Below, piece after piece: positions 4,333 to 62,967 of a DNA stretch of 64,000 bases. Where the stretch lies: the sequence record NC_042013.1; one strand, written 5' to 3'. Under the pieces are notes generated by a model that was not told where the DNA came from, ran no database searches, and saw only the letters and a list, made by a program, of their open reading frames with translations. Made by a program: the position numbers and the translations under genes. Position 1 is the first letter of the stretch, and each line of letters begins with the position of its first letter.

Positions 4333-4407
4333 GGGAGTGTGGCTGACTGGTAAAGCAGATGCCTTCAAAACATTGAGATGCGGGTTCGATTCCTGTCACT
4401 CCCACCA
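4333..4407 (+). tRNA. tRNA with UCA anticodon (opal-suppressor / Trp-like, atypical)
   Basis: Acceptor GGGAGTG/CACTCCC, D arm, loop CT-TCA-AA (TCA 4365-4367), T loop TTCGATT, encoded CCA; C31xA39 mismatch. Confidence 0.85.
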
Positions 4408-35882: not shown

Positions 35883-36271
35883 TTTCCAATAGCCATTACA
35901 TCAATAACCGTGCCAGCAGGGGCGTGGGTAAGAATATAAACCAACAATACACCGGTTGTTGTTGATGTATTGGCACGGCCAGTTATAGTAGTATTGGTAA
36001 CGGACGTTACAGAAGCATACACTGCCCCTCCTTGCGTATCAGTACCTCTGCCAGTTACAAATACTTTTGGAGGATTGGTAAATGTTCCCGCTGGAATATT
36101 AACAGTGAATAATCCGGTTGATCCAGTAACGGTTGCTTGACCGGACCAAATCGTAGGCATCGTTACGTTTTGCCATTTTTGGCTTGTAGAGTTGTATCGA
36201 AGATATTGTCCATTGGACGGACTTGTAATTAAAAAGTCAAATAGCTGTTTTATTTTGATACGAAGTGCCAT
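35879..36271 (-). CDS. virion fibre/lectin-like beta protein
   Basis: Thr/Gly-rich, FTNPPKVFVT, terminal MAIG. Confidence 0.6.
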   Translation of the reverse strand: MALRIKIKQLFDFLITSPSNGQYLRYNSTSQKWQNVTMPTIWSGQATVTGSTGLFTVNIPAGTFTNPPKVFVTGRGTDTQGGAVYASVTSVTNTTITGRANTSTTTGVLLVYILTHAPAGTVIDVMAIGN

Positions 36272-41019: not shown

Positions 41020-41467
41020 TGTATTCCTTTTGGTAGAGAGCATCGATGGTGATTACAGGTGTTTCTTTCATGTTTTCGCAAATTTCACTAAGGGTATTTT
41101 GAAGTGTAGCAATACCGCTACTATCAAGAGGTCTAGATGTGTTGTTAATCTCATATGCTATAGCATAAATGGCCGCTTGGAATTCCTCAATTGATCGACC
41201 GGTTTGATCAATATAACTCTTTCCGATGTCAATCATGACATCATATGAAACTTTTGTTCCAGTGGACATTTTATAGTCACCCTGCGAAACAAAATAACGA
41301 TTCATTTCATAGTAATAAACCACACAAGATGCAATTCTTACAAATCCATATGTAGATTTAGTTGGAACGACCTCATTTGCTTGAAGAGAAACCGGTTCTT
41401 GTAGAACGGATAGTGCATAAGATGGTGTGGAGGCCAACAAGCACATTAGAAATGAAATCGCCTTCAT
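41003..41467 (-). CDS. secreted protein
   Basis: Signal peptide ending SYA. Confidence 0.65.
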   Translation of the reverse strand: MKAISFLMCLLASTPSYALSVLQEPVSLQANEVVPTKSTYGFVRIASCVVYYYEMNRYFVSQGDYKMSTGTKVSYDVMIDIGKSYIDQTGRSIEEFQAAIYAIAYEINNTSRPLDSSGIATLQNTLSEICENMKETPVITIDALYQKEYNGLLK

Positions 41468-56746: not shown

Positions 56747-56769
56747 CATAGCTATGTCAAATTTTAATC

Positions 56770-56798
56770 TTGACGTTGCTGTTTCAACCTGATACATT
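56770..56798 (+). promoter_or_regulatory. sigma70 promoter of candidate sRNA
   Basis: TTGACG-17-TACATT. Confidence 0.6.
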
Positions 56799-56885
56799 GG
56801 TGTCATCGATACTGAATACAACCGACTGCTTGATAGTTCGTGTGCTTAACCGGTTTGCTTCAACCGCGTATTCAGTATCGACACC
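56799..56885 (+). ncRNA. structured sRNA candidate with repeated UGCUU loops
   Basis: Perfect 14-bp closing helix 56806-56819/56868-56881, two inner hairpins. Confidence 0.65.
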
Positions 56886-56890
56886 CCCTC

Positions 56891-56942
56891 TTGACTCCAT
56901 ATACCAACCGAGATAATATCCCATATGAAGGAGATACATATG
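56891..56942 (+). promoter_or_regulatory. promoter plus start-codon hairpin
   Basis: TTGACT-17-TAATAT; CATATG-AAGGAGATA-CATATG. Confidence 0.6.
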
Positions 56943-57224
56943 TGGTATTTTAAACATGACGCAATTCCGAATACATTTATTGATCGTTATTTTTCAATAA
57001 GGGTTGATTCAATGTGGTGGTCTTATGAACACAACAAATTCGTAGAAACTATTGGGGACGTTGGTAAAAAAGGTGCTGCTTCATCAAAAAGCATTGGATC
57101 ATTCAAAGCCTTCAAGAGATTTTTGAGAAAGCATTCGTATCTTAAAGGAAAAACGGTATTGTTAGAATCGAGGTGGTCACATAATAACGTAGTTGCAAAA
57201 TGGATTGATCATGAAAATAGGTGA
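56940..57224 (+). CDS. hypothetical protein
   Basis: SD AAGGAG. Confidence 0.65.
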   Translation: MWYFKHDAIPNTFIDRYFSIRVDSMWWSYEHNKFVETIGDVGKKGAASSKSIGSFKAFKRFLRKHSYLKGKTVLLESRWSHNNVVAKWIDHENR

Positions 57225-57498
57225 AATGTATAAACACAGAAATGCTGTTATTCAAATTCACAGCATTCAAGAGGAAACTGTCAGCATTAAATTATTCTCC
57301 AATGAAATATATCTGGATACCGTAGTAAAGTCTGAGTTACTAGAAGACATAAATGATGGCTTTTATAAGCCTATGTCATCAACCGAAATCAAGTATTTCA
57401 TTGATGATAAAGTCGATTTTTACGAAAATGCTATTACCAAAAATTTCAAAAATTATAATAGCATCATAGAGACACTGAAATTATCAAGAAACCAGTGA
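57211..57498 (+). CDS. hypothetical protein
   Basis: Operon packing. Confidence 0.55.
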   Translation: MKIGEMYKHRNAVIQIHSIQEETVSIKLFSNEIYLDTVVKSELLEDINDGFYKPMSSTEIKYFIDDKVDFYENAITKNFKNYNSIIETLKLSRNQ

Positions 57499-58191
57499 TT
57501 TCATCAAATAATTATCCAACTCTTGATGTGTTGGGAATACAACCCCGTACATTCTTTGTAAGTTATAAATTTTATCGTTATTTATTACAGAGATAGGTTC
57601 AACTCGTAAAATTTTAAAGCTAGATCCTATCTGACCAACAGCATTAACATTCGGCCCTTTACACAAGTCCCACCAAGAACCCTGTGAATAAGTTATCACA
57701 TCATTTCCAGATGGAATTCCGTCGAGGATTTGAATTTTGTAAGGTTCATCTACAGTTGTGAAATATTCACGTAATTCGTCTCGATTGTTAACAAAACGTT
57801 TGAATTTAGCGTTACGTTCTACCAATTCTAACATCTTAGAGGTTACTTCATTTATACATATAAAGCCGTCATATTCAAAGTCATAGAAAAATTCAACATT
57901 TTCAGTGCAGCAATTTGCAGTTTTTAGGTCTGGATACAATAGCATAACGGCTTCAGACATAACTCGTGATGTTGAATTTCGCAAAGCTCTCGCAGCTATC
58001 GGATCATGTTTTGAGATATAGCGTATATGGGAATCTGATGTTATGGGGGTTGATAAATCAGACAATACGCCATTGATTTCGATGAGAATTATGTTCTCGT
58101 CAAAAATGTTCAAATGTTTAAGTATATCCTCGCCCGATGAATTGCGTGGATATGTAGTAATTGTACCGTTATCCAATGTCAACATTATCAT
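57484..58191 (-). CDS. stand-alone ThrRS N-terminal (TGS + editing) domain, catalytic His substituted
   Basis: FFYDF, YKIQILD, DLCKGP, LQRMYG align to ThrRS N1/N2; ends at TGA TAA where the catalytic core would begin. Confidence 0.85.
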   Translation of the reverse strand: MIMLTLDNGTITTYPRNSSGEDILKHLNIFDENIILIEINGVLSDLSTPITSDSHIRYISKHDPIAARALRNSTSRVMSEAVMLLYPDLKTANCCTENVEFFYDFEYDGFICINEVTSKMLELVERNAKFKRFVNNRDELREYFTTVDEPYKIQILDGIPSGNDVITYSQGSWWDLCKGPNVNAVGQIGSSFKILRVEPISVINNDKIYNLQRMYGVVFPTHQELDNYLMKSLVS

Positions 58192-58249
58192 CTTTTGTAC
58201 TCTTTGAAAAATAATACCTTATACTCTAATTTATCTCTTTAAAAGATAA

Positions 58250-58275
58250 AGGCCGGTTGCCCGGCCTCTTTTTTT
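58250..58275. terminator. intrinsic terminator
   Basis: AGGCCGG-TTGC-CCGGCCT plus T tract. Confidence 0.75.
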
Positions 58276-59065
58276 ATTTTTTCCAATTCGGAGGTGGTGT
58301 ACAACCAGTTAACGGGAAAGGATTAGGAAGGTTCCGTGAAATAGTTGGTTTTTTATCAAAAACAATACCAAGCTTCTCAAGGTTCTTACGCGAATCGTAA
58401 AAGAGAACTAGTGTATCTTTCTTAGCGCCCTTGTCAAAAGTATTTGTAGAAAAGTCAGAAGAAACACTTTCCCCCCACGTAACGCCTAGTTCATTACCAC
58501 TTGCTTCATATTCTTGAGTATTGCTTGATAAACTAGAAGACGCATTACCAACCAGCATATTATTCTGACAAGTAGAATACCAAATGGGATTTGTCCAAGG
58601 CTCATTCGGATATGATCGTTTCCAAGGATACGGATCAGTTACTGGAGGGGTATTGATATAGATATAGCGATCTACATATTTTACCTTTTCTTCTTTTACC
58701 AATTCCTCAAAAACCATCGCGCCGATGACGCCTACGTTTTTAGATTCGGTTCCAGCATATGATTTATCAATAGAATCGAACTTAAAACGTGCAGACTCAC
58801 TGTTCGAAACAACCCAACCCGGCACCATATAAGAACTATGTGGTTCAACTATAAACCCAATAGAATCTGGCCCTGCTGGTTTTCCGTCTGTTACGGATAA
58901 CCCATCAACGCTAACTACGAACAAAGATCGTTTATTGCTCCAGTTATAAAGTTTGATAGAGAATTCCGAACCTGCTCGACCCTCGATATAGGTTGCTTCA
59001 TTTAGCTTATATTCGGGAATTTTTTTATTCCCTACAATAATCTCCATCGTATACTTACTTGCCAT
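58274..59065 (-). CDS. hypothetical Ig-like beta protein
   Basis: VVSVDGLSV..G, NVGVIGAMVFEE. Confidence 0.7.
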   Translation of the reverse strand: MASKYTMEIIVGNKKIPEYKLNEATYIEGRAGSEFSIKLYNWSNKRSLFVVSVDGLSVTDGKPAGPDSIGFIVEPHSSYMVPGWVVSNSESARFKFDSIDKSYAGTESKNVGVIGAMVFEELVKEEKVKYVDRYIYINTPPVTDPYPWKRSYPNEPWTNPIWYSTCQNNMLVGNASSSLSSNTQEYEASGNELGVTWGESVSSDFSTNTFDKGAKKDTLVLFYDSRKNLEKLGIVFDKKPTISRNLPNPFPLTGCTPPPNWKK

Positions 59066-59735
59066 TTTCGTCTCCTTCATCAAAGAATGACTTGACGGAG
59101 CCTACAACACCAGCACTACGTATAGAACGATATGACATAGTAGCACTTGATAGGGTTGACATCATATTATCCATATTAGACGTGCTATACGTCATAGTCT
59201 GGCCTTTAGAAAGACCGAGTGATTGCCCGACAGACCACGCGTCTTGGTTCGCGCCTAGATATACAAAAGTCCAGCCATCTGCCGTCTTTTTTGATATAAT
59301 GTCCTTGATGGATTGCTGATTGTATTCCTTTGACATATTATCATGGCCATCAGTAATGATAACAATCAACGGATTTAAAACACCAAGATTTTCAACTTTA
59401 GCAATAGTAGAACCGATTGAGTCATATAGATTAGTCATACCATCCGGTTTATAAGTTTCATTCGTAAGGTCGCTAACTGAATTTAAATCTTTGTTAACGA
59501 AAATATCACGAACGGCATTTACAGACGGGCTAATATAGCTCGACGCTGAAAAAGTCGTCAAACTTACATTACATTTACCCTCTTGTTTCTTCTGTGTTGA
59601 AATGAATTCGTTGAAGCTACTAATTGTAGCCGCTTTTGACGAACCCATTGAACCGGTTTCATCAAGAATGATATGAATATAGGTATCTGAAGAGATAGGC
59701 GTGCTTCCGCCAGAGATAGCAGTTACTTTGGTCAT
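59055..59735 (-). CDS. von Willebrand factor A domain protein
   Basis: MIDAS-like LDETGSM, LYDSIG, IITDG. Confidence 0.9.
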   Translation of the reverse strand: MTKVTAISGGSTPISSDTYIHIILDETGSMGSSKAATISSFNEFISTQKKQEGKCNVSLTTFSASSYISPSVNAVRDIFVNKDLNSVSDLTNETYKPDGMTNLYDSIGSTIAKVENLGVLNPLIVIITDGHDNMSKEYNQQSIKDIISKKTADGWTFVYLGANQDAWSVGQSLGLSKGQTMTYSTSNMDNMMSTLSSATMSYRSIRSAGVVGSVKSFFDEGDENGK

Positions 59736-59749
59736 TTGATTTATCCTTT

Positions 59750-59829
59750 GAAGGTCTTACCTGCCCGAAAACTATCAGGACTTATCTGCCTTCCGCTTGA
59801 ATAACACCATTGTCATTCAAAGCTATTTA
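59750..59829 (-). promoter_or_regulatory. late promoter and structured, pseudo-symmetric 5' leader of the vWA gene
   Basis: TAAATA 59824-59829; 9-bp hairpin; stem with twin GGCAG(A/G)TAAG loops. Confidence 0.55.
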
Positions 59830-59834
59830 TGCAG

Positions 59835-59868
59835 AAAAGGGACAGCCCATTTCTGAACTGTCCCTTTA
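59835..59868. terminator. hairpin terminator
   Basis: AAAGGGACAG/CTGTCCCTTT. Confidence 0.75.
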
Positions 59869-59890
59869 TATCATAGTTAATTAGTAAAAG

Positions 59891-60193
59891 TCAATGTTTT
59901 TGTTTATCACATTTAAAATCGTTGAAACCGAAACTTTTTGCCAATGAAAGAACGTCATCTACCTTGATATCAGCAACTTCGGAGGTATACGTACCTGCAA
60001 CAGCCTTACCAGCAGATTCGATTTCAGAAATAATTTCGATTGCTTCTGCTTCAGTCTTGCCGAAAATATTAATCAGAACCGCACCTACGAATTCGAGAGG
60101 TGTCTTCTGATCATCATGCAAAAGAACGTCATATAGTGACGGTTCTGCGATTTCAACACGCTCAAGAACCATAGTATCGTTATAGGCCGTCAT
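59891..60193 (-). CDS. clpS: ClpS adaptor homologue, altered N-degron pocket
   Basis: YDVLLHDDQKTPLEFV, GKAVAGTYTSEVA; SD AAGGA. Confidence 0.85.
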   Translation of the reverse strand: MTAYNDTMVLERVEIAEPSLYDVLLHDDQKTPLEFVGAVLINIFGKTEAEAIEIISEIESAGKAVAGTYTSEVADIKVDDVLSLAKSFGFNDFKCDKQKH

Positions 60194-60252
60194 TAAGTTT
60201 CCTTTCATACTGTTGAATTTCATAAATGTTATAAAGAGTATAACGATCAATG

Positions 60253-60801
60253 TCAATAGGTATTCCAATGATTATCACAACGAGCCTCATATTCTCTTGT
60301 TGTTCCCAATTCAACTGAGCCGCCTTCCTGTGACACTTTATAAGTTTTTGATGCAGGATGGCCGCATACTGTGCAATTAGCCTTTAATTTAAAATGATCA
60401 TTTGCCATAGAACTTAACGCGGAAACAACAGGGAAAGGGTTTCCTTGCCAATCCATGTCCAATCCAGCAACAACCACCTCTATTCCCTTTTCGAGCATAG
60501 ATTTGATCCACGCAATCACATCACCATTAAAATTTTCACCATAGAAAAATTGTACCTCATCGAAAAATACAATAGTATTCCCGGTATTAATTATCTCTAC
60601 TGGTTCTCTAATACTGGTAGCAGTAGTTTTCAAACCATCGTGACTTACTATTTCCGTTGTAGAATATCTATCATCAAATTCTATTCGAAATACGTGTACA
60701 TCACGAAATGTACCATTTTTTGCCCAAAGTATTCTTTTCAATAGTTCGGACGTTTTTGAAGAAAACATCGGGCCGCTTATTGTTGTTAATTTACCGTACA
60801 T
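60253..60801 (-). CDS. tk: thymidine kinase
   Basis: GPMFSSKT, FDEVQF, AGLDMD, CTVC, YEARC. Confidence 0.95.
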   Translation of the reverse strand: MYGKLTTISGPMFSSKTSELLKRILWAKNGTFRDVHVFRIEFDDRYSTTEIVSHDGLKTTATSIREPVEIINTGNTIVFFDEVQFFYGENFNGDVIAWIKSMLEKGIEVVVAGLDMDWQGNPFPVVSALSSMANDHFKLKANCTVCGHPASKTYKVSQEGGSVELGTTREYEARCDNHWNTY

Positions 60802-60808
60802 CTAAAAA

Positions 60809-60855
60809 TCTCCAATAAAAATTTAATTATAAATCATTGGAGACTGTATATTCAA
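60809..60855 (-). promoter_or_regulatory. tk promoter with anti-SD arm in the spacer
   Basis: TTGAAT-18-TATAAT; TCTCCAAT 60809-60816 / ATTGGAGA 60836-60843. Confidence 0.65.
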
Positions 60856-60857
60856 AT

Positions 60858-60886
60858 AAAAAAAGGGTTGGAAAACCAACCCTTTT
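60858..60886 (-). terminator. hsp20 terminator
   Basis: AAAAGGGTTGG/CCAACCCTTTT. Confidence 0.85.
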
Positions 60887-60893
60887 CAATCCA

Positions 60894-61295
60894 TTAAAGG
60901 ATTTCAATTTTCCTTGGCTTAAGGGCCTCTGGTAATTCGCGATGCATTTTAACACGAAGAATACCATCCGCCAAATCAGCGCTATCTACTACAAGGTATT
61001 CAATGAGTTTGAAGTCTACCGTAAAATCACGCTTTGCAATTCCCTTGCGAACGTAATTAGGTTCCTTTTCATCCTCAGTTTTTTTACCGGTGATTGTCAA
61101 TTTTTCTGATTCAATAGAAACATCGATTTCATCACGTTTGAAACCAGCAACAGCAATATGGATTTCGTATGTATTTTCATCATCCGAAATAATGTCATAG
61201 GGAGGATATTTGACTTGATTGGTTGCCGCTCCATAGAGTTCTTCGATAAAACGAGCAGGGGAATAATCATAGTAGAAATTTGTAGGAAGTGTCAT
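60894..61295 (-). CDS. hsp20: small heat-shock protein Hsp20 (IbpA-like)
   Basis: YPPYDI, AVAGF, KGIAKRDF, DGIL. Confidence 0.95.
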   Translation of the reverse strand: MTLPTNFYYDYSPARFIEELYGAATNQVKYPPYDIISDDENTYEIHIAVAGFKRDEIDVSIESEKLTITGKKTEDEKEPNYVRKGIAKRDFTVDFKLIEYLVVDSADLADGILRVKMHRELPEALKPRKIEIL

Positions 61296-61356
61296 TGTTA
61301 ATCTCCAAAAAGCAAGATTGTTAAAATTAACGGACCTTTAATAAGCATCCGTTAAT
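61296..61356 (-). promoter_or_regulatory. ROSE-like RNA thermometer
   Basis: 5' 9-bp hairpin, then AAUCUUGCU-UUUU-GGAGAUU with bulged G opposite the SD. Confidence 0.7.
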
Positions 61357-61367
61357 CTTAGATAATG

Positions 61368-61982
61368 TCAGTACCCAACAATTTCAAGTCTTTGTTTCAA
61401 AAAATTTTTAAAAATCTCATTGATATCATATGATTCTTTAGAATGTAATTTCATTACTGGTTTATCAACGAGCACTTCTAAATTGTCGATTTTATACAAA
61501 TAGTCATCATCGTTTATTTGTTCTATTTTGTACGGAAGACCACCAATCAAATCAATACCTTCAATCATATTATAAATTCGAATCGTTTTATAAAAGTTTT
61601 CACGTTGATTAATATTATGATCAAGTTCATCAAAAACGCCAATTCTTTCGAAATTTGGCCCAAATGATGATATTTCATAATGATCATTTTTGATAAGGGA
61701 ATCATATGTTTTCCATACGATATAAAAATCGGTATCTCTAATAATTTTTTTGTTATCAATCAAACCGTCCAGTATTTTATGTTCATCTACAAATATTCCC
61801 AAAAAATGAACAGGTGGATCACTTTCATTAAAAGACATGAAATTAACAAAAGAATTCAAATGAACTTTATAATCTTCACGTATATAATCAAATTCTTCAG
61901 CGTAATTGGTATCACACAATAGGGTAGTTATCAGGCCGCCCTCGGTTAAAAACCCATACTTATCTGTTTCGAACATACTCAT
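61368..61982 (-). CDS. hypothetical protein (N-term paralogue of 61960..62559)
   Basis: MFETD..GFLTE.GL.T. Confidence 0.65.
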   Translation of the reverse strand: MSMFETDKYGFLTEGGLITTLLCDTNYAEEFDYIREDYKVHLNSFVNFMSFNESDPPVHFLGIFVDEHKILDGLIDNKKIIRDTDFYIVWKTYDSLIKNDHYEISSFGPNFERIGVFDELDHNINQRENFYKTIRIYNMIEGIDLIGGLPYKIEQINDDDYLYKIDNLEVLVDKPVMKLHSKESYDINEIFKNFLKQRLEIVGY

Positions 61983-62559
61983 ATGCCTTTTTTATGGTTC
62001 GTTTTACGTTTGAATGAGTTCCTGACATTAACGCAAACTCGGAAACTATCCAATTGTTTTTTGCGGTCCTTTTTCCAGAAAAAGCATACGTCGAATCAAT
62101 CGAGGACTGATACTCTGCTACTTGAGTAATAGTCCCAAGAGAAAATTCCATTTGACCCTTATTATCAGAAGTGTATTCGTGATATACCATCAATTCATGT
62201 AACGCACTAATATAAATCGATGTACAAATTTCGGCACGAGTTGGTTTTTTCCATTCATGCGTGGCATCCATAAAAATCATTCTCGACGCGTTTTTGACAT
62301 TAACATAAACAATCGATCCACGACGCTCAATGGGATATAAAGACACGTCATTTACGTTATATGCTCTAAAGTCAGAAATGATATTATCGTAATCAACAAA
62401 AATACCATGATATGAATAACGACCATCATAGTTTTGTTCGGATGTTACCTTATCCATACGGGTATTATCCTTCAAAAAATCTACAAATTTCGAATCCCTT
62501 AGAATAACAGTCATTAGACCATTTTCAGTTAAAAACCCATGACGATCTGTTTCGAACAT
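61960..62559 (-). CDS. hypothetical protein
   Basis: MFETDRHGFLTENGL. Confidence 0.65.
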   Translation of the reverse strand: MFETDRHGFLTENGLMTVILRDSKFVDFLKDNTRMDKVTSEQNYDGRYSYHGIFVDYDNIISDFRAYNVNDVSLYPIERRGSIVYVNVKNASRMIFMDATHEWKKPTRAEICTSIYISALHELMVYHEYTSDNKGQMEFSLGTITQVAEYQSSIDSTYAFSGKRTAKNNWIVSEFALMSGTHSNVKRTIKKAYEYVRNR

Positions 62560-62578
62560 ATTAAAATTCCCTAAAATA

Positions 62579-62602
62579 TTAAAGGGGCCTAAGCCCCTTT
62601 AA
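62579..62602. terminator. hairpin terminator
   Basis: TTAAAGGGGC/GCCCCTTTAA. Confidence 0.8.
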
Positions 62603-62603
62603 A

Positions 62604-62714
62604 TTACTTACCAACGGTGTCCTTGGTCTTGGAAACTGCGTCCTTAAACCACTGTGGGGAAGGGATAAGCCAACCAACAGCAACGCCAATAACCAATGCA
62701 ATTACATAACCCAT
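62604..62714 (-). CDS. 36-aa single-TM protein
   Basis: MGYVIALVIGVAVGWLIPSPQWFKDAVSKTKDTVGK; SD AAGGA. Confidence 0.6.
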   Translation of the reverse strand: MGYVIALVIGVAVGWLIPSPQWFKDAVSKTKDTVGK

Positions 62715-62715
62715 G

Positions 62716-62967
62716 TTAAATATCCTTCTTTAGTTTCTTGTTTCTACGAACTGCTTCATTACGCTTCTTACGACGAATTTGGCCTTTCGTTTCGTGGTAC
62801 TCATTTTGACGAAGGTCTTTGACAAGACCCTCTGACGAAACACGACGCTTCAAAGCTTTGATTGCTTTTTCCAAATTCGATTTCGCTTCGTTTTCATTAT
62901 TAGCTAGACGAACAGGGACTGTCAACCCTTTTTTGTTCAATCTATCGCCATAACTATGTGCACTCAT
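62716..62967 (-). CDS. rpsU: ribosomal protein bS21 homologue
   Basis: LEKAIKALKRR..SEG..K..R..EYHE....RRKKR.EA.RR. Confidence 0.85.
   Translation of the reverse strand: MSAHSYGDRLNKKGLTVPVRLANNENEAKSNLEKAIKALKRRVSSEGLVKDLRQNEYHETKGQIRRKKRNEAVRRNKKLKKDI

Follow-up and report, generated by a model that had tools for sequence, protein, structure and literature searches.

Bacterial threonyl-tRNA synthetase (ThrRS) carries its editing site in an N-terminal region of two domains, N1 (TGS) and N2, known from the structures of the E. coli (1TJE/1QF6) and S. aureus (1NYQ) enzymes. In E. coli ThrRS, C182 adjoins H73, H77 and H186 and editing depends critically on all four: the replacement H73A cuts the editing kcat 7000-fold, and H186A cuts it 70-fold (PMC4041444). 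The role of C182 is to bind the A76 2'-OH and that of H73 to activate the catalytic water; the two motifs concerned, HXXXH and CXGXH, have been described as invariant in the ThrRS/AlaRS editing superfamily (PMC12003907). This superfamily also has free-standing members related to the AlaRS editing domain, such as AlaX, which keeps both motifs, binds Zn, hydrolyses Ser/Gly-tRNA(Ala) and has no TGS domain (PMC12003907). The eukaryotic protein mL39, in turn, derives from the ThrRS N-terminus and consists of TGS and N2 with no synthetase part; it is not an enzyme and is built into the mitoribosome. To our knowledge, synthetase-derived pseudoenzymes such as mL39 are known in cells and not in phages. 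Here we analyse gp705, encoded in the last 64 kb of the genome of the Agrobacterium jumbo phage Atu_ph07 (Polybotosvirus), which is alike in kind to mL39. Comparison of sequences strongly supports the view that it is a truncated phage thrS, which diverged quickly and was then frozen by selection.

gp705 is the product of gene 705 (RefSeq YP_009612370.1), which RefSeq and GenBank name 'threonyl-tRNA synthetase'. In the Atu_ph07 genome paper the gene appears only as a RAST call under 'Translation', with no discussion (PMC6102473), and our literature search found no paper on gp705 or on any phage counterpart. The final 64 kb of the 490,380-bp genome, 64,000 nucleotides in all, are called here the window, and a window coordinate is the coordinate in the Atu_ph07 record minus 426,380. 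The coding sequence occupies 57484..58191 on the minus strand and runs from an ATG start through 235 codons to a TGA stop; this gene model follows from the list of open reading frames (ORFs), the identity of the window with Atu_ph07 and the homology to the ThrRS N-terminus. The TGA (57484-57486) is directly followed by a TAA (57481-57483), and these tandem stops (57481..57486, minus strand) can be read from the sequence. We considered a longer read-through product and rejected it, since the TAA abuts the TGA and no same-strand ORF lies downstream.

Regarding homology, gp705 aligns to residues 10-232 of S. aureus ThrRS (E=1.4e-25), to residues 5-235 of E. coli ThrRS and to the E. coli N1-N2 crystal construct 1tje, with 26-30% identity to the bacterial N1-N2 regions, and it matches positions 1-234 of 643 of the phage ThrRS family phrog_18916. 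The likeness to the ThrRS N-terminus is homology and not chance. On the TIGR00418 model gp705 covers only positions 2-164 of 565 and scores 63 bits, below the curated equivalog cut-off of 383.65. Pfam gives a single domain, tRNA_SAD at amino acids (aa) 168-200, with 24.1 bits, barely over the cut-off of 24. The Pfam TGS model does not match the gp705 sequence; evidence for the TGS fold comes from the predicted structure together with the ThrRS alignments.

A first-pass annotation, made from the sequence alone, had read the gene as TGS plus N2 only, ending at TGA-TAA. The minus-strand ORF and the ThrRS N-terminal alignments confirm it, and alignments, AlphaFold2 and Foldseek all give TGS and N2 domains of the bacterial ThrRS type. 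The N1/TGS-like beta-grasp domain comprises aa 1-62 (58006..58191, minus strand), which align to approximately residues 5-62 of ThrRS. The N2 domain, with the ThrRS/AlaRS editing-domain fold, comprises aa 63-221 (57529..58005, minus strand) and is supported by the tRNA_SAD match and by Foldseek to 1tje. The remaining aa 222-235 (57487..57528, minus strand) form a C-terminal helix, defined by the predicted helix at 222-234, the tblastn end point and the alignment. In full-length ThrRS a linker helix connects N2 with the catalytic core, and this C-terminal helix equals its beginning, the ORF ending at the equivalent of E. coli ThrRS residue ~235 (numbering from thrS of NC_000913).

We searched for the rest of a synthetase with the complete ThrRS of the related Sinorhizobium jumbo phage Phosso (PV764938, 469 kb). 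In tblastn of the full-length Phosso protein against the window, only 58191-57496 (aa 1-236) matches, and everything beyond gp705 has E >~1, so that the window holds no detected remnant of the catalytic or anticodon-binding domains. Residues 237-640 of the Phosso enzyme, compared by tblastn with 50,697 phage records, matched 41 of them and none from Atu_ph07. Within gp705 itself Pfam finds neither the class II catalytic core (tRNA-synt_2b) nor the HGTP_anticodon domain, the latter being present in Phosso ThrRS, and the supplement of the Atu_ph07 paper lists no other tRNA synthetase. Because the catalytic and anticodon-binding domains are found neither in the window nor in the Atu_ph07 genome, gp705 lacks what defines a ThrRS; it is no synthetase, and its database label is wrong. 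The same searches support the earlier description of a free-standing module.

AlphaFold2, run on gp705 with a 147-sequence alignment, gave a model with a mean predicted local distance difference test (pLDDT) of 95.8 and a predicted TM-score (pTM) of 0.92. It shows a beta-grasp N1 (strands 2-5, 11-14, 34-39, 42-44 and 54-60, helix 20-26), an alpha/beta N2 and the final helix 222-234. Foldseek against the PDB, the check proposed in the first-pass annotation, returned ThrRS N-terminal regions as the best matches, with a TM-score normalised to the query (TMq) of 0.84-0.90 and a root mean square deviation (rmsd) of 2.1-2.3 A. The match to 1tje (TMq 0.84, TM-score normalised to the target, TMt, 0.88, rmsd 2.1) assigns the editing-domain fold to the model. 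Mitoribosomal mL39 chains came as a second group (TMq 0.77-0.81, E ~1e-13, 18% identity), and AlaRS and AlaX as a third (TMq ~0.5, E 1e-5 to 1e-8); isolated TGS domains (1wwt, 2kmm and 3hvz) also match. In the viral structure library the gp705 model matches only itself. The likeness to mL39 brought up in the first-pass annotation is therefore real at the fold level (TMq ~0.8), and gp705 shares with mL39 the TGS+N2 fold and the lack of a synthetase core, and has itself lost the editing histidines. However, mL39 is a eukaryotic component of the mitoribosome, and the 18% identity to mL39, against 26-31% to bacterial and phage ThrRS, points to an independent origin of the two.

The origin of gp705 can be seen in the comparison with Phosso. 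Both phages share the gene block of small heat-shock protein (sHSP), thymidine kinase (TK), ClpS, VWA and gp706, with proteins 40-56% identical between them. After this block, and in the same orientation, Phosso encodes a complete ThrRS of 640 aa with all four Pfam domains (TGS, tRNA_SAD, class II core and anticodon-binding), whereas gp705 has only the N-terminal part. In this syntenic position the two proteins are 31% identical over aa 1-236, which makes gp705 the most diverged gene of the block with respect to Phosso (31% vs 40-56% for its neighbours). Synteny ends precisely with the 3' end of gp705; the convergent genes that start there are missing from the Phosso locus.

Three further, metagenomic members of the gp705 family were found in a large protein collection (233-236 aa; 97%, 88% and 87% identity). 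Two of the three orthologue loci lie on contigs of 492 kb and 51 kb, respectively, with the same neighbours as gp705. In a HMMER search of 1.84 billion representatives the P0002 cluster stood alone above 34% identity to gp705, and nothing fell between 34% and 87%. IMG/VR holds no members besides the phage itself, and a scan of JGI metagenome contigs gave none. A 338-aa candidate (P0004) was discarded as a frameshifted or split bacterial thrS, not relevant here, and short matches that looked free-standing were mostly fragments from contigs <1 kb.

The four family members are intact ORFs of 233-236 aa whose stop positions differ by no more than one codon. Behind the TGA of the orthologues comes a TAA, at a distance of 0-3 codons, and one locus (L004) has GGA-TAA. 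Pairwise ratios of nonsynonymous to synonymous substitution rates (dN/dS) are 0.034-0.071, with dS saturated and reaching ~2. These values are as low as those of the VWA gene, gp706 and the baseplate hub, and below that of thymidine kinase in the divergent pairs. Neutrality is rejected by a binomial test (p=7e-10 to 1e-40). Both domains are constrained, the ratio of nonsynonymous to synonymous proportions of differences (pN/pS) being 0.12 in the TGS part and 0.08-0.09 in the N2 part; the C-terminal helix is the least constrained, with 0.2-0.3 in three divergent pairs. The frameshifts or random decay in homologues that had been proposed as the mark of a pseudogene are thus not what we see, because the orthologues carry neither and are under strong purifying selection.

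The present constraint was preceded by faster change. A tree of 76 N-domains places the gp705 family together with Phosso, its closest relative there apart from one metagenomic fragment in the same group (Shimodaira-Hasegawa-like approximate likelihood ratio test, SH-aLRT, 90). The stem branch of the family, 1.28 changes per site, is the longest in the tree, where the median tip length is 0.37. In a Tajima-type relative-rate test the gp705 lineage had 2-2.7 times the unique changes of Phosso with five of seven outgroups, and a lesser excess with the remaining two (overall p=3e-5 to 0.14). The guanine plus cytosine (GC) content is 35% in gp705, 37% in the window and the phage, and 50-51% in Phosso. 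Since the GC content of gp705 and that of its third codon positions (GC3) fit the phage, we rejected a recent horizontal acquisition.

The changes include the editing site. It had been noted before that RHSCAH of E. coli ThrRS becomes RNSTSR (H73N, H77R) and that DMCRGPH becomes DLCKGPN (H186N, with D180 and C182 kept), and our alignment with E. coli thrS agrees in both cases. Of the four HXXXH/CXGXH site residues three are replaced in gp705, whereas the site of Phosso ThrRS is intact (RHSMAH / CLGPH). According to sequence and alignment, NSTSR at aa 72-76 (57964..57978, minus strand) takes the place of HXXXH (E. coli H73...H77), a motif whose two positions are both histidine in 98% of 141 relatives. 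In the same way CKGPN at aa 177-181 (57649..57663, minus strand) takes the place of CXGXH (C182...H186), with cysteine and glycine kept and the histidine changed to asparagine. In the alignment, NCC at aa 93-95 (57907..57915, minus strand) replaces the near-universal I-G-P (E. coli 94-96), on a strand that pairs with the Y104 strand in the AlphaFold2 secondary structure. All four family members have the same NSTSR, CKGPN and NCC. Of the 155 nearest relatives found in an exhaustive HMMER search, 139 carry HHCH at the four site positions, and NRCN is unique to the gp705 family. Judged by its motifs, gp705 fails the defining features of an active editing enzyme, having no HXXXH and CXGXN instead of CXGXH.

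Beyond the site itself, we took the 51 ThrRS-N positions at which at least 80% of the full-coverage relatives agree. The gp705 family keeps 53-55% of them, a lower share than any other of the 76 sequences; Phosso retains 86%, two full-length ThrRSs whose histidines are degenerate retain 71-73%, and the median lies at 90%. In E. coli numbering, H73N, H77R, A80S, I-G-P to N-C-C, G101E, E121T, H186N and GAYWxG to PISVxN are nearly all fixed in the family, while R72, Y104, D105, K156, D180, C182, G184 and P185 are retained. With respect to bacterial ThrRS, gp705 thus differs not only in lacking the catalytic and anticodon domains; its I-G-P has become N-C-C, the GAYWxG hairpin is lost and only ~55% of the conserved positions remain. 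This pattern strongly supports a shift of constraint and not decay.

Two groups of proteins are instructive here. The full-length ThrRSs P0066 (R-E-C-L) and P0118 (L-Q-C-L) have lost the editing histidines and keep Y104, K156, D180 and C182 as gp705 does, but they are complete synthetases and retain 71-73% of the conserved N-domain positions, as against 55% in gp705. On the other hand, a free-standing bacterial protein of 246 aa (P0165/P0091) has the same two domains as gp705 and likewise no catalytic domain; it differs in keeping HHCH, in its basic isoelectric point (pI) of 9.3 and in being cellular, and with 27% identity it is no close relative of gp705. Its gene (L010-L013:6001-6741) belongs to an uncultured bacterial lineage with contigs up to 558 kb, where it occupies the usual place of thrS, upstream of infC-rpmI-rplT, and has no NCBIfam model. 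From its sequence it looks like a genuine, undescribed trans-editing factor of bacterial type, because HHCH is kept and the protein is strongly basic.

The tRNA supply of the two phages also differs. The published scan of Atu_ph07 reported tRNAs for all amino acids but Thr and Asn, plus an opal suppressor (PMC6102473). Phosso has four tRNA-Thr genes (cgt, ggt and two tgt) and three tRNA-Asn genes (L017:8713-8862, 36178-36260, 41179-41254). Judging from the lack of a reported tRNA-Thr in Atu_ph07 against the four tRNA-Thr and the ThrRS of Phosso, the Atu_ph07 lineage seems to have given up its own threonine-charging pair yet kept the N-module. The loss of tRNA-Thr and that of the catalytic part of ThrRS coincide in these two phages (n=2). 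An opal suppressor lies at 4333-4407 of the window (plus strand, anticodon TCA; ARAGORN calls it tRNA-SeC), and is consistent with the back-up TAA found 0-3 codons after the TGA of gp705 orthologues and with the GGA that L004 has for TGA. Phosso, for its part, has an amber suppressor (anticodon CTA, L017:26731-26806), which carries the annotation tRNA-Pyl. It also encodes a 'histidyl-tRNA synthetase' (L015:4096-4686) that comprises no more than 196 aa of the class II catalytic core, close downstream of tRNA-His with one small ORF between them; this is a second truncated synthetase gene in the phage group.

The comparisons above show or strongly support the following history, in which gp705 is an exapted remnant. 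An ancestral full-length phage thrS, in the position kept in Phosso, was cut within the linker helix behind N2, with loss of the catalytic and anticodon-binding domains in a lineage reported without tRNA-Thr. The remaining N1(TGS)-N2 changed quickly, at three of the four editing-site residues and about half of the most conserved positions. Purifying selection has since kept it nearly unchanged, as a module that folds, is expressed separately and is not part of the virion. gp705 would no longer hydrolyse Ser-tRNA(Thr), because the water-activating H73 is absent together with H77 and H186; the effects of H73A and H186A predict such a loss of activity (PMC4041444). Some of the binding site for the aminoacyl-adenosine may be left, through C182 with Y104, K156 and D180, and the retention of these residues is the reason why the 3' end of (aminoacyl-)tRNA is our preferred target. 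Our tentative reading, to which we give somewhat less than an even chance, is that gp705 is a non-hydrolytic binder of the (aminoacyl-)tRNA 3' end, probably that of host tRNA(Thr). Such a binder would act within the translation-takeover gene set of the phage, which includes IF3, S21, peptidyl-tRNA hydrolases and a CCA-adding enzyme. The more specific prediction that it clamps the 3' end of host (aminoacyl-)tRNA(Thr), and so protects or channels to the ribosome a tRNA that the phage does not supply, is a long shot. The first-pass annotation had put forward tRNA-acceptor binding, protection of tRNA from toxins, a decoy function, inhibition of editing and ribosome binding, all of which are putative activities.

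Several observations weigh against a tRNA 3'-end binder. In full-length ThrRS most of the tRNA affinity and the identity recognition come from the domains that gp705 has lost. gp705 is acidic (pI 4.9, net charge -9), like the N-domains that act in cis in ThrRS, and not basic as is the free-standing bacterial TGS-N2 protein (pI 9.3, net +13); this counts mildly against a strong stand-alone RNA binder. The N-C-C that replaced I-G-P next to the Y104 strand has an inferred position relative to the pocket, and the GAYWxG hairpin is lost; such changes might have closed the pocket or turned it to another use, instead of keeping it for A76. The retention of Y104, K156, D180 and C182 may be structural, because these residues are also invariant in the full-length ThrRSs with degenerate histidines. 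Moreover, part of the long branch and of the rate excess may reflect a shift to an AT-rich genome, and the family, whose distribution the first-pass annotation had wished to see checked, consists of four known sequences from one phage lineage.

The main rival to the tRNA binder is a protein- or ribosome-binding scaffold with no tRNA role, in which the N1-N2 fold was re-used independently as in mL39; its ubiquitin-like TGS domain could, for example, attach it to host ribosomes, to host ThrRS or to a phage partner. The mL39 chains are the best fold matches after the ThrRSs (TMq 0.77-0.81), the acidic protein shows no adaptation towards RNA binding, the editing site and nearby conserved motifs were heavily remodelled and then fixed, and the ribosome-directed phage genes S21 and IF3 lie nearby. 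However, the likeness to mL39 is by fold only (18% identity), the pocket residues Y104, K156, D180 and C182 are invariant, and no partner was identified: the sole gp705-specific neighbour is a convergent 95-aa ORF, because the others are shared with Phosso, which has the full-length enzyme. We regard the scaffold as unlikely, though a serious contender. A different proposal would keep the tRNA and change the chemistry, gp705 being a trans-acting aminoacyl-tRNA deacylase of altered mechanism or specificity, perhaps for a substrate other than Ser-tRNA(Thr), which would use C177, K152 and D175, the new Arg76 or Cys94/95 (gp705 numbering), along with substrate-assisted catalysis. Catalysis without protein side chains does occur in some editing folds, among them DTD and the editing domain of archaeal ThrRS. 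Strong selection keeps the fold and some of the pocket, and the free-standing relatives AlaX are genuine trans-editing enzymes (PMC12003907), but H73A alone lowers kcat 7000-fold and H186A 70-fold (PMC4041444). Furthermore, HXXXH/CXGXH is described as invariant across the superfamily, and NRCN is unique among the 155 relatives. In Mycoplasma ThrRS, histidine loss is associated with loss of editing. An altered deacylase appears quite improbable to us.

Two explanations remain. A functionless pseudogene, left when a deletion or rearrangement removed the 3' two-thirds of thrS, would agree with the truncation relative to the syntenic Phosso gene, with the break of synteny exactly at the 3' end, with the lost catalytic residues and with gp705 being the most diverged gene of the block. 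Nevertheless, four orthologues stay intact with the same ends at dS ~2, dN/dS is 0.03-0.07, the test rejects neutrality with p as low as 1e-40, positions that changed are fixed and not scattered, the fold is predicted with high confidence and the upstream region is conserved like those of neighbouring genes, which effectively excludes a pseudogene. The idea that gp705 is one half of a split ThrRS, as the crenarchaeal ThrRS-cat/ThrRS-ed, has its precedent in the split ThrRS genes that exist in some archaea. But tblastn with Phosso residues 237-640 finds no core in Atu_ph07 or the window, the supplement of the phage paper has no other tRNA synthetase and the editing histidines are gone, and we consider this explanation effectively excluded too, with an even smaller chance.

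Concerning expression, the 82-nt upstream intergenic region of gp705 (58192..58273, minus strand; terminator scan, fold z=-3.8) contains the hairpin, strong and bidirectional, that terminates the preceding gene (58248-58269), followed by an AT-rich stretch; AAGAG stands 9-13 nt ahead of the ATG. A promoter and a ribosome-binding site of the gene's own probably lie here; no match to the sigma-70 consensus was found. This spacer is 99% identical to that of L004 and 89% to that of L006, the most distant orthologous locus covering it. We rejected three candidate features: a repeated promoter motif, as the conserved upstream 21-mer is unique in the window; an upstream regulatory RNA fold, as the fold is the terminator hairpin alone; and a special conservation of the gp705 upstream region, as all intergenic regions of the block are 85-95% conserved. 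Rfam and ARAGORN give only two distant tRNAs in the window and no tRNA-like or regulatory RNA near gp705. All seven intergenic regions of the block in 56747-62715 are 85-95% identical between Atu_ph07 and the L006 relative, and the coding DNA of the block is less conserved (mostly ~67-86%, dS ~1-2), which suggests dense, strongly constrained regulatory signals between the genes.

The convergent conserved ORF of 95 aa lies at 57211..57498 on the plus strand, according to the gene calls in L004, L006 and L007. Its 3' end overlaps gp705 by 15 nt, it is present in all three relatives with dN/dS of 0.09-0.2, and it is absent from the Phosso locus, marking where the Phosso synteny ends. RefSeq gp704 (126 nt) is probably the 3' end of this ORF, which has no Pfam or PADLOC match; nor does PADLOC find a defence or anti-defence match for gp705 or its neighbours. 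The published virion mass-spectrometry list of Atu_ph07 includes the neighbours 701 and 707 and not 705; gp705 is a non-virion protein. The same phage region holds homologues of ribosomal protein S21, IF3, ClpX, ClpS and the small heat-shock protein (L004:1448-1951, L004:3225-3476; window 62716-62967, minus strand), and in Phosso a ribosome recycling factor is encoded just upstream of ThrRS (L002:4508-5080). Together these genes form a translation and proteostasis takeover cluster.

Thus, the database annotation can be corrected: the product of gene 705 is not a threonyl-tRNA synthetase. gp705 offers a clear natural case of a virus converting the editing domain of a synthetase, by truncation at a domain boundary, a burst of change and then purifying selection. 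Phosso, with a full ThrRS and four tRNA-Thr, and Atu_ph07, with a stump and no tRNA-Thr, provide a natural comparison for the translation genes of huge phages. If the module binds tRNA 3' ends without cleavage, phages would have in it a tool of a new kind for the management of host tRNA, and it would also offer a ready-made substrate-trap variant for studies of the ThrRS editing site. Should it actually clamp the host tRNA(Thr) as predicted, it would be the first synthetase-derived pseudoenzyme of a virus to protect or hijack tRNA, perhaps aimed at host toxins that target the acceptor end or at host tRNA turnover during infection.

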